38,909 bases of DNA from positions 1-38,909 of the forward strand of contig FLMG01000591.1 of NCBI GenBank assembly GCA_900088475.1, read 5' to 3'. The notes beneath the pieces are model-generated. The model ran no database searches, had not been told where the DNA came from, and worked only from the letters and a program-made list of their open reading frames with translations. Of this stretch, positions 651 through 17,082 are shown piece after piece; position 1 is the first letter of the stretch, and every line of letters starts with the position of its first letter. The position numbers and the translations under genes were made by a program. Origin of the DNA: Hyphochytrium catenoides (Eukaryota > Protista > Hyphochytriomycota).

Positions 651-3600
651 CTAGAGGATCGTAGGAGGTCGTCCTGCTCCTAGCGCGGCTTCTTCATGCG
701 GTGGTATGCCATAGAGCTTAGGGACCACAGGCATAGGTGCTCCTCTTCTCACCAACGAGGCACTAGTGGTCGGACCGGACATAAGAGAAGGAGGAATCAT
801 CTGTGTAGCAGTAGAGACAGGAAAGGAAGGAGGAGGCGGCTCTGTCGTTGGAGGACGGAGATAGGGAAGAGAGCGCTTCCTATCGGGTTCATAGCCATCG
901 TCGCCCTGGAGGTCAGGGTTGTGCTCCAGGTATGGTGTCTCGAGTCTCTGAGCAGGAGAAAGTGCGGGCTGCACTGTGCTTCTCGTCATCGGGGGATGGA
1001 GGACAGCCCTATCTCCAGCATTGCTCCCTCTCCTTCCATCATGGATTATAGAGAGTGAACGCAGATAGCGATCAACATCTCGCAGCCCCTCTCTACCATC
1101 TGGATGCAGGTCCGCATAACCATAGCAGGCCGGAGTGAGAGCGTCTGCATTGTAAAAGAACATGCTATCGTCCCGCGCGAGGGAGAGGGACCTACGATCC
1201 CCACTGTACCCCGCGATTGAGTGACCTCCTTCCCCTGCACCTCCTGCAGGATAGCGTTGTCCTGCCACTATGCTCTGCGCTATTGACTGAGCGGCGACAA
1301 TGCTTTCGATCCTTCGCGAAAATTGTTTGAGCATGGTTTTCTCTTTGGCAAAATTGGCCTGCAAAGCCGGCTCTTCGGGTGAGAGCTGGGGGCTTCCCCT
1401 TCCATACTCTTGCAAAGAGACAATTTCTGAAAAAAGGCCCTCCTTCTTGGCGACTAGGTCTCTATAAGTCCCTTGCTCTGCAACAACTCCGTCCTTCATC
1501 ACGAAGATCTTGTCCGCTGTCACAGTGGTCTGGTAGCGGTGCGTTACCTAGAAGGGATAGGCAGTCAACAAGGGCATATCGCAGCTTTAGCTCCATGGAC
1601 AGGAAAGGTGGAGATGAGCTCCAATCAGCGAGAGGATGCGAACAAACGAATAAGAATGATGGTAGAGGACGAACGCAGCGCTAGGTAATGGTGAGCGCGC
1701 GGAAGAAGAATCACGTACGGATATTATCGTCATCTTATACTTTCGCTTCAGCTTATCGAAGGTTTGCACGATCGCATACTCCGTCTCCGGATCCAGAGCA
1801 GAAGTTGCCTGTCGTTTGCACAGAAAGAGTTAGATCTCACTAAAGCTACCAGCTAGGAAAAAGTAACCAAGCTTGAAGGAGATAAAACAAGAGAAAGAAC
1901 AATGCCAAGAAAGAGGAAGATGCCAGTCGTCGGCAGAGGCGATAGAGACTAGACAAAGTAGTTTGAAGAGTGACCGGGAGTGGAAGACTCTAATGCTTAC
2001 CTCATCTAGAAGCAGGATCTGCGGCCTCCTACAGAGGGCTCGAGCTAGGCAGACCCTTTGCGCCTGGCCACCAGAGAGGGAGGATGTTGCATGCTGGCCG
2101 ACCACCGTCTCATAGCCTTGAGGGAGACTCATGATGAAGTCGTGACATTCGGCCTCTCTTGCCGCCTCAAAGCATTGCTCGTCCGTCGCTTCCGTCAATC
2201 CATAGCGGATGTTATCGAGAATAGTGCCATTAATAATCATTATATCCTGGAAAACGACGCCCATTTTCTTCGACAAGGACGCCCGGGAGAACAGCTCCAC
2301 GTCTAGTCCGTCCACCACGATATTCCCACTCTCGGGCTTCTCAAAGCCTAAGAGAAGGGAGAGAACGGTAGACTTTCCACAGCCACTGGTGCCGACAATG
2401 CAGTTGTAGGTCCCCTGAGAGAAACAGAAACGATAGAGGAAGAGGACACAGGGAAGGGAGGGTAAGGGTGGAGCCAGGACCTGACGCTAACTAGAGAGAC
2501 AGACCGCAAGACACGTGGTACAGCGCCAACAGGGGCAAACTGTATGCCATGACCGCAGAGAACAATGGCAAAAGTGACAAATGATACGCATACAAACCTC
2601 TCTCTCTCTCTCTGTGTGTGTCTCTCTCTCTCTTTCTTCTTCCTTGGTCCTAATTTCTCAAGCTAACTTCACACCTCAGGACCGTGTCTCTTCTTACCTT
2701 GATAAACTGCATTGAGATGCCATCGAGGGTGTAGGTCGGTGAGGACGGATTGTATTTGAACCTCACATCCATGAGACCCAGAGATTCCTTCATAGTGGGC
2801 AAAGGCGGGGGAATGGAACTGTCCAGCCCCATCACTTTCACATCCTTGATGTCAGGACTTTTCCTCCCTCCTTCTCTCCCTCCGTTTCCGCCCAGACCTC
2901 CTTTCCCTTCTTCTCTGTCGTCGCCTCCATCCTTCTCCAGCTCCTCGAGGACGAGATCCAATCGTTGCAAGCTCCCTGCATTGCCAATAGCCCAACGCAT
3001 AAATCCTCCTAAGGTAATGACTGGATTGGCAAGATTCTGATACAGGGCTATGTATCCGGCGAAGTCTCCAATAGAAGGGCCTGGAATGCCCTTCTTTGCT
3101 GAGTAGAAAATGTTATAGGCCACGGCTGCAATCTGTAATGTCACATAGACATAGACAAAGCCAGAGATGTACGTCTGTACAGCGGTGGCCCAGATTTGAC
3201 TGGAAATGGAAGACTTTCTAAGCTTCTCAACGTGATGTCTGAAGCGAGCGAGATAGGGCTCAAAGATGTCAAACGCCTTGACAACACGCTGGCACTCAAT
3301 GCCATTTTGAAACTCTGCCGCAAGATAAGCGCTCTTCCCTACGTAGTCCTTTGACTTGTGCGCGGCGTGCTCTTGAGGACCGCCGGAAAGAAGCACCCCA
3401 ATGAAGAGGAACCCTAGTATGCCCTGTGCCCAGTCAGTAAGGATGATATAGCCAAGAGCGAAGACTATGCACGCCATAGGGTTCAGCAGGTTCCAGAAGA
3501 CAGCTTGCCATAAGGCATTGACACGCGCAATGTCTGCTGTAAAGAGATTGTTCAAGTCTCCCTCTGAGTGAGAAGCAAAAAATCTCGAATGCATGCGCAG

Positions 3601-5176
3601 TATAGAAGAAGTGAGCCGCAGTTGCATTTTCGTGGTTGCATCCGCAATGATCTTGGCTTGATAGTAACCCACTCCAATATTGCAGAGAATGTACGGCGCG
3701 CACAGAACCAAGAGCCCTGTCACACCGTCAATTAGCGCTTCCTCGGGCGTTGGATCTACGGCGTTCTTCCTCGTCACGTCCAGAGCCTTGTTGAGAATGT
3801 ACTTGATGAAAAAGGACTGCGCCGGAGCGACTGACGCATTCACGAAGACGATGAGGAGCACGACAAACAAGTCAAATTTCTGGCCTGCCCAGTGCTTGAC
3901 AGTGCTAACGATGACCTCCCATGTCCCATATGCACCCTCAACAGTCCCCATGTTTACTGTCTGCATGTAGGACAGAAAGAGAGTTGCAGACATGCCAGGG
4001 GGTCGATGAGGAAGCGCTCTCTCAAGGAAAAGAAGGAAATCCGTCGAGGTCATATAGCCGTGATCATTGCCGGCTGCAATAATGAGCTGTGTGATCATTA
4101 GCTCGTACTGGGGCAAAGCCAGACCAGGAAGACTACTCAGTAGGTCCTTTACAGAGTCTGTAGGCAAAGGAAAGGAGCAAGCAAGTGGCGCCATTAGATA
4201 AGGGACAGAAGTGGCTCATCAGGAAGAACTAACGAAGACAAAATNNNNNNNNNNNNNNNNNNNNNNNNNNNNNNNNNNNNNGAGAGAGAGCGAGATCTGA
4301 CAGTGGCTGTGCACGCGTCAGCATAGCTCCCGTGCACAGCAAGAGAAGTAGAAAGAAGAGGGAAGGTAGTTTGGCGAGAACAATAAACCAAGCGCACTCA
4401 CCAATAGAGATCAACAGACTTGGCTGTTCGTCTAACTGTAAGACCTTGGAGGTGAACTTTCTCGAGTAAGGCTTAATCATCAGCCTCAGTGAGGAGAGAA
4501 AGATGAAGAGAACAGTCGTGATCGACCGCACAGGGACCGAAGAGGAGCCTACCATGTAGGCCAACGGTACTTGTCCCTGAAAGAACTGATAGTATGACCG
4601 ATAAAAGACAAAGGCGGTGATGATAAGGACAAGCAGGGTCTCGGTCATGGAGGATCGGGAAGAGATGATAAAAGATCGGAGCCCTATCGCTCTCGCTCCT
4701 GCTTCTGTGGCGAAGATAACACCGGAGAAGAGGAGAAAGTACGTTCCCCAGACAGGGTAATCAGACGTAGGGGCGAAGGAGAGGATCATGAACTCTTGAA
4801 GGATGTTGAGAAGGATGAGTGCCATGATTCCATAGTAAACTATGTCATCGTCAATCACGCGCATCACTGAGCGAGAGATAGGGAGACGCGAGAGATGTTG
4901 CTGGTTATGACGTTGGACAGAAGGGAGAGATGATGATGGAGTCTCTCGCTCTGTTGGGAGAGAAGAGCGAGAGCCAGAGTCATGTTCGTCTTCTATGACG
5001 ATCACTCTCTCGGCAGGAGACTGTCCACTCTTCTTCCCTGTTAGGAAGGGAGAGAGCTCCGGCTTCTTGGACGGAGGAGAAGAGCGAGGCAGCATTGGAG
5101 AAAGGACACTGCTGCCCACTATCGCACTGCCTTGGGACCTTCTCTTGCGGTCCGGCCGCACAGGAGAAGGTTCCAT
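651..5176 (-). CDS. ABCB-family half transporter (TMD-NBD) with N-terminal four-helix ion-channel-like domain and EF-hand-like linker; exons 5176-4402, 4157-2698, 2414-2001, 1808-1719, 1547-651 (about 1211 aa)
   Basis: Spliced translation gives Walker A GTSGCGKST, Q-loop VVFQD, signature LSGGQAQRVCLARAL, Walker B/D-loop ILLLDE|ATSALD and H-loop ISVTHR. A hydrophobic ABC membrane domain (EGDLNNLFTADI) fills exon 2. All four introns are GT-AG and phase-compatible. The start codon is uncertain, and intron 1 contains an N gap. Confidence 0.9.
2598..2640. repeat. (CT)n/(GT)n microsatellite in ABC intron 2
   Basis: ctctctctctctctctgtgtgtgtctctctctc read directly. Confidence 0.85.
4245..4281. other. 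Assembly gap (N run) inside ABC transporter intron 1
   Basis: Run of n next to a GA repeat. Confidence 0.99.
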
Positions 5177-5739
5177 CCACTTCTCTTCTCTCTAAGGAGA
5201 GAGATGGCAACGAAAGGAAGCCCAGCAGTATACACAGAGAAAGAGGGGCCGAGCGTCTATTCCATGGCACCCTAAGGTGTAAGGGAAGAGGGGAGAGGAG
5301 GAAGAGCGAATGTGCAGAGTGTTTTCTAGGGAGAGAGGACGGATAGTCTTGGTGTCTGCCTATCTCTTCAACAACATGGACCAGCAGGAAGTCTTGACAG
5401 GGGTCTGCGGTCGAGGTCAACAGCACCAACAGGCAAACAGAGCTTCTCCCTCTCTCTTTTTGTTCTGGCGCCAGATCTCAAGAAACAGCTCGGATGCCGC
5501 GATCTATTCAACAGTTAGGATTCCGGCAGTCAATCAGAACGAGAGAGAGTCTCCAATGATCCGGACGGACAGGACGGAGCTGCAATAGGAAGAGGCGATG
5601 GTTGAGATCAATCAATCAACGAGACGGTGGCGCCGCAGTGAGAGAGAGAGGGACAAAGCGAAGAGAAGAGAAGAAAAGAAGCGGGTGATCCTCTCGCACT
5701 ACAAAGGGAAGTACATCTTTTATTATTAGCAGACCTGTA

Positions 5740-13535: not shown

Positions 13536-16500
13536 ATGATAGCAGATCTAGAACTAGAAGGGTGCTGCAGCTGGGCCAGCCAGACGCAGGAAGCAACACA
13601 GGCTTTCTCGGATGGAGGAGCTTCAGATGGAGAAGAAGACTCCAACGTACCTCTGCAGCTGAGGGTAGGGCCGCGTCTGTTTTGCCGTCAAGTGTGGTTC
13701 TCTATTGTTCAACTTGTCCAGATCATTCTGCTCTCGTCTCTTCTCTCAGTCCTTCTTCAAGCTCTTTTCACTCGTATGGCACTATGCTTTTTGCCCTTGC
13801 AAACTGGCGTCCTCCATATTATTCCTCCACCGATCTTTGGGTTCTGCGGCAAACTCCGACTTCCCTTGGCCCTACAGAACCGTTGACGCTTGTGTCCAGC
13901 TTTACCCTCTTAGTATCGTCGTTCGGGCTACCTTTCTAAGGCCTTTGGTGCCTAGCGTTTAGATGACGCTGACTGAGCCTTTCCCTCTTTAATGCACCCG
14001 ATTTCGTCTTTAGGCATGGGGTCGACTTGTTCCTATGTTGAAGGGCTTAGAGCCGGTGGATCTAATGAATAACCAGCTCCAATACATCTTCGGGAGAGGA
14101 TCTAAGGTGGATGTCATTTTCAAGAACGTTCACATCAGTTCCATGCATTGCAAAATCTATGCTAGAGAAGAAGGGCCCGACATGAGGAGAGTGATGATTG
14201 AAGATCTAGGAAGTGCAAACGGAACTTTTCTTAACGGAGTGCAGCTGCAGAGAAACCAGCCTCAGGTGGGGCCCTACCTCTCTTACTAAACTATCAAGCG
14301 GGCAGCCCTCCTCTCTCTTACCTCCACTGTCGCCCGTAGTCGGACTGTTCTTTTGCTGTTTTAGGCCTCGCTCTCCTGGCTACCTTCTCCCTTCTGTCGG
14401 TTGCTTCTATAGGTCCCCTCCCATGCTGATATCCCTAACTATGCGCTTCTCTTTCCAGGAACTCTTGTCCGGAGACATTGTCTCGTTTCTTAAAGCATAC
14501 AGTGGAGAAAGAAAGGAGAGGAGGAGAGGAGACGGTCCTCACTCTCTGAAGGAGAAGCCGAAGTCTGTTCCTGCTTATTTATTTACCCAGTTCACCTCGA
14601 GAAAAGGGATGAACGGACAGGCAGATGTCAACGGTGTGGAGAGTGAATACGATATCATGGAAGTACTTGGGGCTGGGACCTTTGCACAGGTGAGACAAAG
14701 GGAATTGGGTGTCCATAGCACATTAGTAAGTCCGGTATGCTGATGCCGAAGGGCAAGAGAGCGGTAACGGCGGAGAAGAAAGAGAGCGAGTTCAATAGAA
14801 AAAGAGATCTGGTAGGCATGCTAACGTTCCTTTCGTCCTTTACAGGTGTGCCGAGCTATACACCGACCCACAGGACAGGAGTATGCTGTTAAGATTATCA
14901 AGAGAAACCAGTTCTCACTCCTTCCGAACTACTCTGAGAACGATGTCCTGCACGAGATAGAGATGCTTCGAAAGCTGGACCATCCCAACATTATCAAGCT
15001 AAGGAACTTTTTCAAGACAGACCAGGCTATATACATTGTAAGGCCAAAATGGAGGAAACTCCTCCTTTCAAACTAAGAAGTAGTAGACTGGTTTTGCCAT
15101 ATGACCATGAGGAGGAGGAGGAGGCAATCCAGTATGGAAGGCTTACGCCGCAAGCTGCCTTTGCTCTTTGAATGTATCTTAAGCTCTACTCTATTTCTTG
15201 ACCATGGGCTATTCCCTTTACTCCTCTGTCCGTTCCCTCTGGTCCTGTTACGACTTGTCTTTTCTCTAACATGTTCTTGATATAAATCAATCTTGATAGG
15301 TTACAGACCTGATGCGTGGTGGAGAGCTGTTCGATCGCATAGTGGACGGAGGGGCGTACAAGGAGAGCTCAGCGAAGAAGCTAGTCGTCAGGATCTTGGA
15401 AGGTAGACTCTTCTTTAAGCTGCGTTAGGATTCTGTCCAGCCCTGGTGTTAGAACTCTCTCTTTCGGTGCATGCGATATCCGCTTCTAAGCTACTGAACC
15501 CTAGGAGTTGCCTACCTTCACGCTCAAGGAGTGGCCCATCGTGATTTAAAGCCTGAGAACATTCTCTTTCCATCCAAGAATGACGACACGTTTCCCAAGA
15601 TAGCAGACTTTGGCATAGCGAAAGAAGGTAGACCTTCGGCTTCCTCTACTAAACTCTACTCGCTCAAGTTGCCCTCGCTCCATATTTTGGCTGTTACTGC
15701 TCTCCCGTTAACTATTCTTTTATCGTCGTGACTCTGCTGACCTTATTCGCTCTTCGCGGGCTTTCTTCTTTCGTAAGCCAACACATTCAAGACCTTCTGC
15801 GGCAGTCCTATGTACTTTGCCCCAGAAGTTCTACGCCGGAAAGACACAGTTCATGAGAGGGGGTCCTACAGCGTCAGTGCAGACATGTGGTCTTTAGGTG
15901 TGATATGTACTCTTCCCTTCGTCTCTCTCCGCGTTTATCTATGCCTCCTGTCAAGCCCTGTCTCAATTCTCTTGCACGGCAGCACTGGGTGGGCTCGTTC
16001 GTGCTATCTATCCTATCTGCCTCGTAGTGCTCAGAAAGTAGGAACTGAATACTCCATGTGCCTTGCCAAATTCTTACTCATTTTCCCTCTGACCCGTATG
16101 GCATCAAGCCCTTTTACTTCTACCTTTTCTGCCTGCAATTGCTGGCTGTCTTTTCTGACTTCTGCTGTACAGGAGTGATAGTCTATATCATCCTTAGCGG
16201 TAGACCGCCCTTTGAGGATGCCTACTTTGATGAAGCAAGCGGAGGGACACGGTACTCCTTTGGTTACCCCGAGTGGGATCATATCTCTGAGCAAGGTGAG
16301 GCTGTTTGTGCTTGGCAGAGCCATCATCGAAGCTGTGCCGTGTACGAGGGAACGCGTCATAGCAGGATCTTCGTCCTCGATAAGGACTGTGGGTGCGATT
16401 ATGGCAAAATTTTATTGCAGGATCCATTGTATAGCAGACGTCGATGTGGCAGCTATCTCACACGGTCCTCCGCATCATCTGGCCCTCGATCCTTTTATCT

Positions 16501-16922
16501 CATTTCTTGCGTTTGTAATAGCCAAGGACTTCATCAGACAGCTCCTGGTATTGGATCCCAAGGGAAGGATGACTGCTAAGCAGTCTCTTCAGCATCCCTG
16601 GCTGAGAGAAACTGTTGAAAAGCTCACGAGAGAAGGCGGCCAGCCTCCTCGTCCTCAACCAGTTGCTCTCGTCTCTGCGCTGGAGCCGTCTCCTAGTGTG
16701 GAGAAAATGGCAACTCTCAGCAGAGATCTTCTCTCTTCATCTATTGCCTGCAGAAGCGACGGTGCTCCAACCCCTAAGGCTGCAGAGGGAGGAGGTGCGG
16801 GCAAGAGATCTCGAAACCAAAGCTCTGCAGAAAGCACTGGAACGGCTACGCGCTCCAGTACCGCAAATAGTGAAGGCGAGACTGAGGAGCCGAGCTGTAA
16901 GCGCCAAAATAGCAATCGGTAA
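13536..16922 (+). CDS. CHK2: CHK2/Cds1-like FHA-domain Ser/Thr kinase; exons 13536-13664, 14014-14265, 14459-14689, 14846-15037, 15300-15403, 15505-15627, 15778-15897, 16173-16295, 16522-16922
   Basis: N-terminal SQTQEATQ cluster and FHA motifs ([27 protein letters not shown]). Kinase motifs are [67 protein letters not shown] and [13 protein letters not shown]. All introns are GT-AG and in phase. Confidence 0.9.
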
Positions 16923-17082
16923 GCAGTAATCTTCTTGTTGTTGCTCTCCGTGTCTTTGCCTCTTTCTGGCCTCTCCTTTTGACAGCATGCCCCTTCAGTC
17001 CGTAGAAGCCATTGTCGAAGCCTGTTTGACGCTTTACATCAGTAGGGAGCTCTAAAATCTGTCAAGTCTACGGAGCCAGGTA

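Follow-up and report, generated by a model that had tools for sequence, protein, structure and literature searches.

Each context outside ion channels in which a voltage-sensor domain was found has altered the understanding of electrical signalling. These contexts are few, and include phosphatases, Hv1, the exchanger SLC9C1, some cyclases and TMEM266 (PMC10651576). Here we describe a gene of Hyphochytrium catenoides (assembly GCA_900088475.1) in which a four-helix module of the S1–S4 type stands in front of an ATP-binding cassette (ABC) exporter. It lies on the minus strand of contig FLMG01000591.1, of which positions 1 to 38,909 were analysed as one stretch of 38,909 nucleotides (the window). 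The gene runs from 5176 to 651 in 5 exons, and its spliced product has 1211 residues. The analysis confirmed that the gene is real and that it codes for an ATP-driven membrane exporter preceded by a sensor-descended four-helix module. An earlier sequence-only reading had proposed a voltage-sensor-like bundle fused to an ABC half transporter at 2698–5176, which corresponds to exons 1 and 2 only; exons 3–5 extend the gene to 651.

The phosphatases Ci-VSP and TPTE/TPTE2 resemble the window protein in having an N-terminal pore-less S1–S4 bundle, a basic linker and an effector that is not a channel. They are its best structural matches, and Ci-VSP also appeared in the sequence-profile search. In contrast to them, the effector here is an ABC exporter rather than a phosphatase, S4 carries a single arginine where they have an array of four or five, and a conserved helical domain of ~90 residues lies between S4 and the effector. 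SLC9C1, the sperm Na+/H+ exchanger, is a secondary transporter; its S4 is charged, it has a cyclic-nucleotide-binding domain, and its sensor is C-terminal to the transport domain. It shares with the window protein the covalent fusion of a sensor to a transporter, and it was the top PDB match, with S2 and S3 in register. Unlike SLC9C1, the window transporter is driven by ATP and carries a charge-poor sensor at its N-terminus.

An extra N-terminal helical bundle before a type IV ABC core is also found in the TMD0s of TAP1/TAP2, ABCB9/TAPL, ABCB6 and ABCC/SUR. The TMD0 of TAP and TAPL consists of four helices in a half transporter, and it serves partner binding and targeting rather than transport. 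The window bundle differs from the known TMD0s in bearing sensor signature residues. Charge-poor S1–S4 domains, in which the sensor fold is kept and the S4 charges are lost, occur in TRP channels and some two-pore-channel sensors, and TRPV3/4 and TPC2 were among the fold matches of the window domain. Unlike in these channels, no pore is attached here, and the countercharges of S2 and S3 remain conserved. Orthologues with the same architecture are annotated as ABCB half transporters in oomycetes, for example Phytophthora sojae 'half transporter ABCB family' and PPTG_09717.

Database entries for these orthologues carry the names 'half transporter ABCB family', 'ABC transporter' or 'hypothetical protein', with no mention of the sensor-like domain. 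The sequence-only reading had known of no characterised sensor–ABC fusion. No description of one was found in the full-text literature searched, outside which most subscription journals lie, and none is included in a 2023 review that aimed at all sensor-domain protein families (PMC10651576). The architecture can nevertheless be found in domain databases, because the proteins are publicly available, at least one of them with an above-threshold match to Pfam Ion_trans. An ABC exporter with a sensor-derived domain would be a new class of partner for the sensor, conserved across all major oomycete lineages.

The descent of the bundle from the S1–S4 voltage-sensor domain of ion channels is supported by sequence profiles, language-model features and the predicted fold. 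A family hidden Markov model, made from an alignment of 33 sequences (A2), was searched against all PDB sequences, and the 60 best matches were listed. All 60 of the matches listed are sensor-carrying proteins, with SLC9C1 (E 9e-4) and NavAb/CavAb (1e-3) at the top, followed by NavPaS and Ci-VSP (0.02). In these alignments the S2 motif of the family, Y-x-x-D-x-x-x-R, lies over F-x-x-E-x-x-x-K/R of the channels, and the S3 aspartate lies in register over the acidic residue of channel S3. Pfam Ion_trans matches 19 of the 33 members individually at E up to 1 (best E 7.5e-9), and no other Pfam family matches more than 2 of them. The full-length Aphanomyces euteiches protein P0055 reaches 32.9 bits over Ion_trans profile positions 2–85 (S1–S3), above the curated cut-off of 25. 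The similarity to sensor profiles is thus found at the level of the family. It is improbable that the bundle is a generic four-helix TMD0 that resembles voltage sensors by convergence without being related to them. The listed PDB matches contain no ABC protein and agree with the family at the S2/S3 signature residues, no TMD0 is among the fold matches listed, and one member exceeds the curated Ion_trans threshold.

Descent from a voltage sensor was also supported by the other two approaches. By language-model features, 78 of the 100 nearest clusters of the window domain are Ion_trans (top score 0.91), and the Phytophthora ramorum domain likewise falls among Ion_trans clusters. The AlphaFold prediction from the single sequence was unusable (pLDDT 52), and the 33-sequence alignment was used instead. 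The window domain was then modelled with confidence (pLDDT 84.4, pTM 0.77) as four long helices and a short pre-S1 helix. The model is an up–down bundle with both ends cytosolic, a topology compatible with the cytosolic start of the ABC domain. When the model was compared with PDB by Foldseek, nearly all of the 50 matches listed were sensor domains, with Ci-VSP first (TM-score 0.61 for the query and 0.70 for the target) and the NavAb sensor also among the best. Against Swiss-Prot models, TPTE/TPTE2 were at the top (TM-score 0.64–0.65, root-mean-square deviation 3.7–3.8, ~140 residues), followed by Hv1.

The residues kept and lost were counted by column over alignment A2 (Table 1). The sequence-only reading had described four hydrophobic segments of S1–S4 pattern in exon 1, an F-x-x-E-x-x-x-R/K motif in S2, an acidic S3 residue where channels have aspartate, and an S4 without a regular RxxR array, and each of these points was borne out. 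All four segments were found on the minus strand and correspond to the four AlphaFold helices; the hydrophobic S1 segment spans residues ~106–134. F155, E158 and R162 are in register with channel S2, and E179 takes the acidic position of S3. Together these four residues form a charge-transfer centre, for which the relatives have Y, D, R and D in 28–33 of 33 sequences, and Y-x-x-D-x-x-x-R is the S2 motif of most of them. The S4 array, defined as at least three basic residues at every third position, is absent. No basic residue was found at −3, −6 or −9 from position 231 in any of the 33 sequences, so the classical gating-charge array is missing from the whole family and not only from the window copy. 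R231 stands alone within the membrane part, and past Pro236 the family consensus continues as a cytosolic polybasic stretch, R-A-R-T-F-S-K-K-L-H-K. No sequence-level match of S4 to any sensor profile or channel S4 was obtained in the PDB profile search or with Pfam Ion_trans. By the end points of the structural alignments, from which alone its placement was derived, R231 may correspond approximately to R4 of NavAb or R3 of Ci-VSP, which would place it on the inner side, close to the charge-transfer centre.

Three results bear on this reading of the gene. First, the window N-domain alone matches Ion_trans weakly and out of register (E 0.023, not significant). The other two come from contigs of three DNA runs of the source organism and of one metatranscriptome, which were aligned to window 2500–5300. 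The assembly gap at 4245–4281 was bridged by no contig from the three DNA runs, and its continuity is unproven by reads. No splice joint was seen in the one metatranscriptome run, in which the sole RNA match is a 198-base contig within exon 1 (4751–4948). As for the first result, a profile of 31 N-domains, from which the window protein and its relative P0001 were excluded, gave the window domain 51 bits, compared with 6.4 bits for the best of 500 shuffles. Because of this difference, the membership of the window domain in the family is far beyond chance. A TPR_DOP1 match of Pfam on the window N-domain was considered spurious.

The gap is a microsatellite-associated break. One DNA contig extends 160 unmatched bases beyond 4244, so the true length of the gap is well above the 37 N shown in the assembly; on its other side, a (GA)n run comes before 4282. 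The lack of a bridging contig and the greater true length would both fit an assembly or annotation artefact, in which the gap conceals a misjoin and exon 1 comes from another gene. Such an artefact is very improbable in view of the homologues. The spliced protein gives a single collinear BLASTP match to P0043 (residues 101–994) and to P0018 (residues 105–983), at 40.5% identity each, and both matches cross all four junctions. The exon 1/2 join is in frame, and the multiple alignment has zero gap at this junction (...LLISI|DSVK...). In the environmental homologue P0001 (contig L001), one uninterrupted frame without an intron runs from the N-domain through the junction into the beginning of the ABC domain. 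Exons 1 and 2 fit as consecutive in-frame parts of one protein with no residues missing, and a paralogue swap would still leave the architecture the same. A hidden exon in the gap is not required by homology.

For the phase-1 join of exons 1 and 2 claimed by the sequence-only reading, the splice signals, the frame and the gapless homologue alignment stood, but the RNA joint did not appear. The splice probably holds on the strength of homology. The same reading had named the gap as a place where a misjoin could hide; the homologues that are collinear across the junction argue against one.

The distribution of the fusion was followed from the window protein to its relatives. A phmmer search of the window N-domain against 1.84 billion representatives found one relative only, P0001 (E 9.5e-5). 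A search with the ABC-membrane exon led to oomycete proteins of 32–45% identity, whose N-termini have the same four-helix domain. The oomycete relatives were thus reached through the ABC part, and then through a region search with the N-terminal part of P. ramorum P0002. This search gave 52 proteins, mostly of ~1000 residues, from Phytophthora, Peronospora, Plasmopara, Hyaloperonospora, Peronosclerospora, Globisporangium, Pythium, Lagenidium, Albugo, Aphanomyces, Achlya, Thraustotheca and Saprolegnia and from environmental assemblies. The same architecture is therefore present in oomycetes, one of the groups in which the sequence-only reading had suggested looking for it. These comparisons show that oomycetes and related environmental lineages have conserved a fusion of the predicted sensor-like domain with an ABC core, and that purifying selection has acted on this fusion over the long term. 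In a maximum-likelihood tree, the window protein lies with P0001 on a long branch inside a well-supported environmental clade (P0003, P0004, P0043, P0048). Two further clades, that of the Peronosporales/Pythiales/Albugo and that of the Saprolegniales, stand apart from it.

The core of the protein is an ABCB-type, type IV half transporter, because of its Pfam domains, its intact motifs and the similarity of a full-length homologue to ABCB1/4/11. One six-helix ABC_membrane domain is followed by one nucleotide-binding domain (Pfam), and the nucleotide-binding motifs GTSGCGKST, VFQD, LSGGQ, ILLLDE (with the catalytic Glu), SALD and VTHR are all intact in the spliced protein. The half transporter to which the bundle is covalently joined is thus catalytically competent. 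For the full-length homologue P0018, the nearest solved relatives are the halves of ABCB1/ABCB4/ABCB11 (E 1e-97, PDB), and also ABCB6. With the front bundle, the product would be a ten-helix (4 + 6) ABCB-type half transporter, presumably a homodimeric ATP-driven exporter.

The linker between S4 and the ABC core (~90–95 residues) is the best-conserved part of the N-terminal half, with 68% mean column identity over 27 sequences and the motifs G-R-x-x-G-D-M-T-x-x-E-L and F-L-E-R-A-L. An EF-hand pair was considered for it and rejected. Pfam EF-hand families matched only at E 0.05–0.2, each in no more than 4 of 27 members, and the window copy had no such match. The PDB profile search with the linker gave no EF-hand protein and no meaningful match of any kind. 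By eye, the loop positions expected to be Asp/Asn/Ser are Cys/Ala and Arg/Gly. The linker is probably a conserved helical coupling domain, and a calcium-binding EF-hand is not supported by its sequence.

The bundle most likely acts as a largely static, sensor-derived, TMD0-like module and not as a steep voltage switch, because the outer gating charges are lost and the polar network is kept. A sensor-derived TMD0 was one of the two readings that the sequence-only account had put forward. The module would retain an internal network formed by the S2 aromatic, acidic and arginine residues, the S3 acidic residue and one S4 arginine. The conserved acidic residues of S2 and S3 would keep this single arginine in the charge-transfer centre. 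The polybasic segment after S4 and the ~90-residue helical linker would connect the largely static bundle to the ABC membrane domain, and the module would serve regulation, partner or lipid binding, anchoring, or targeting of the exporter. A static module would show that the sensor fold was reused as a TMD0, and the family would point to a lineage-specific membrane protein of organisms that matter as pathogens of plants and animals.

Gating by voltage is a possible role, yet a doubtful one; the sequence-only reading had likewise doubted real voltage sensing because S4 has no RxxR array. In a functional sensor, the membrane potential, or an ion or pH change, would move S4, and the polybasic segment and linker would then switch ATP-driven export. 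The aromatic residue at 155, the acidic residues at 158 and 179, R162 and the basic residue at 231 are kept in 30–33 of 33 sequences across deep oomycete lineages, which is in favour of such a sensor. The order of sensor, basic linker and effector resembles that of the voltage-sensing phosphatases, whose sensors also gave the best matches in structure, and a sensor-gated transporter, SLC9C1, is the best PDB sequence match. On the other hand, every member has only one basic residue in the membrane part of S4, which is His in two of them, without RxxR periodicity; S4 matches no sensor profile by sequence; and the window copy has changed conserved residues, conservatively or not (N124, F155, E158, E179).

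The setting of the orthologues also bears on gating. P0021, which is PPTG_09717 by name, is the Phytophthora parasitica orthologue with the same architecture. It is listed in Supplementary Dataset 1 of the P. parasitica zoospore membrane proteome with 9 predicted transmembrane segments and 30 unique peptides (PMC12223298). Its spectral counts were 45–101 in cell-body fractions and 24–50 in flagellar fractions, the ratio between cell body and flagella was 1.00:0.19, and it was classed simply as an ABC transporter (PMC12223298). The same study presents sensor–cyclase fusions as a novel family, and the N-domain of PPTG_09717 is not mentioned in it. The protein is abundant in zoospore membranes, and zoospore behaviour is tied to ion signals (PMC12223298, PMC7409359), which is a further point for a sensor. 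It is a tentative idea, with the odds against it, that a minimal one-arginine sensor couples ATP-driven export to the potential across the zoospore membrane in oomycetes, as a voltage- or ion-regulated ABC exporter. An active sensor would make this the first primary pump known to be regulated by voltage, a primary active transporter under an S4-type sensor.

The near-invariant mid-S1 aspartate (column 124) is replaced by asparagine in the window protein and P0001. It recalls the mid-S1 aspartate that is the proton-selectivity residue of Hv1. A third role would be that the charge-poor sensor itself conducts, with a constitutive or regulated gating-pore path for protons or cations beside the exporter, comparable to Hv1 or omega currents. 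This is quite unlikely. The mid-S1 aspartate of the relatives would suit it, Hv1 is among the fold matches, and gating-pore currents are typical of sensors without S4 charges (PMC10651576). However, the asparagine of the window copy and P0001 does not fit, and in the fold searches the phosphatase sensors rank above Hv1.

The features of the gene are given in Table 1. Residues 1 to ~100 form a low-complexity Ser/Pro-rich N-terminus, and the collinear homologue alignment begins at residue 101. The acceptor of intron 1 follows a polypyrimidine tract, exon 2 has 1460 bases, and the borders of exons 3–5 are all GT...AG. The low-complexity tail in exon 5 extends ~230 residues past the alignable region (total ~300 residues). 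This C-terminal tail (window 651–1350, minus strand) is about twice as long as the tails of the Phytophthora orthologues and cannot be aligned to them.

Table 1. Features of the minus-strand gene at 5176–651 and conserved positions of its N-terminal domain (family counts over the 33 sequences of alignment A2)
Feature	Coordinates	Strand	Content and basis	Family residue	Window residue
Exon 1	4402..5176	minus	residues 1–258 plus one base; ATG at 5176; open reading frame, sequence		
S1 helix	4775..4846	minus	residues 111–134 (AlphaFold helix 12–35 of the domain)		
S2 helix	4661..4753	minus	residues 142–172; F155, E158, R162 (F-x-x-E-x-x-x-R); AlphaFold, register with NavAb and SLC9C1 S2		
S3 helix	4580..4657	minus	residues 174–199; E179, and R193 at its end; AlphaFold, column counts		
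S4 helix and polybasic continuation	4427..4531	minus	residues 216–250; R231, K235, P236, then R239, K240, K244		
Intron 1	4158..4401	minus	GTGAGT...CAG, phase 1; donor ATTG|GTGAGT (intron start 4401), acceptor CAG|AC (exon 2 start 4157); holds assembly gap 4245–4281		
Cytosolic linker domain	3871..4157	minus	residues 259 to ~354; helical; S4 to ABC elbow/TM1		
ABC transmembrane domain (type IV exporter, six helices)	3109..3870	minus	Pfam ABC_membrane E 2.1e-22		
Rest of exon 2	2698..3108	minus	end of membrane domain, Gly/Glu-rich insert, start of nucleotide-binding domain		
Exon 3	2001..2414	minus	Walker A (GTSGCGKST), Q-loop, LSGGQ, to Walker B (ILLLDE); Pfam ABC_tran E 1e-13		
Exon 4	1719..1808	minus	D-loop (SALD) and downstream segment; sequence		
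Exon 5	651..1547	minus	H-loop (VTHR), end of nucleotide-binding domain, low-complexity tail, stop TAG 653–651		
Position 124, mid-S1				Asp 31/33	Asn (also P0001; the only two exceptions)
Position 155, S2				Tyr 28/33	Phe
Position 158, S2				Asp 28, Glu 4 of 33	Glu
Position 162, S2				Arg, invariant in 33	Arg
Position 179, S3				Asp 32/33	Glu
Position 193, end of S3				Arg 32/33	Arg
Position 231, S4				Arg 30, His 2, Lys 1	Arg
Position 235, S4				Lys, invariant in 33	Lys
Position 236, S4				Pro 31/33	Pro

Microsatellites of the (GA)n/(CT)n type are found at the flanks of the gap and also, at 2600–2650, fill intron 2, and the source-organism contigs break there. Over 2900–4100 and 4380–5160, which cover exons 1 and 2, DNA run X2 is nearly identical to the window. 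Two older DNA runs, X3 and X4, which carry the same species label, show ~5–10 single-base differences per kb over the same parts, suggesting strain polymorphism. Small parts of the gene are also present in a soil metagenome (X5) and a plant metatranscriptome (X1).

P0001, the only close relative of the window N-domain, lies at the end of a 60-kb metagenome contig (L001:871–2100). Elsewhere L001 encodes genes that are clearly bacterial, namely CO dehydrogenase subunits, UbiD and TctC. The eukaryote-like reading frame of P0001 is broken by a one-base deletion near L001:2034, and the character of the sequence shifts after ~2090. L001 looks like a chimeric assembly and not like a bacterial copy of the gene.

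Elsewhere in the window, the plus strand at 14200–16950 contains open reading frame fragments with protein-kinase motifs (a glycine-loop-like G-A-G-T-F-A and, later, S-G-R-P-P-F), whose sequence suggests a multi-exon Ser/Thr kinase gene.

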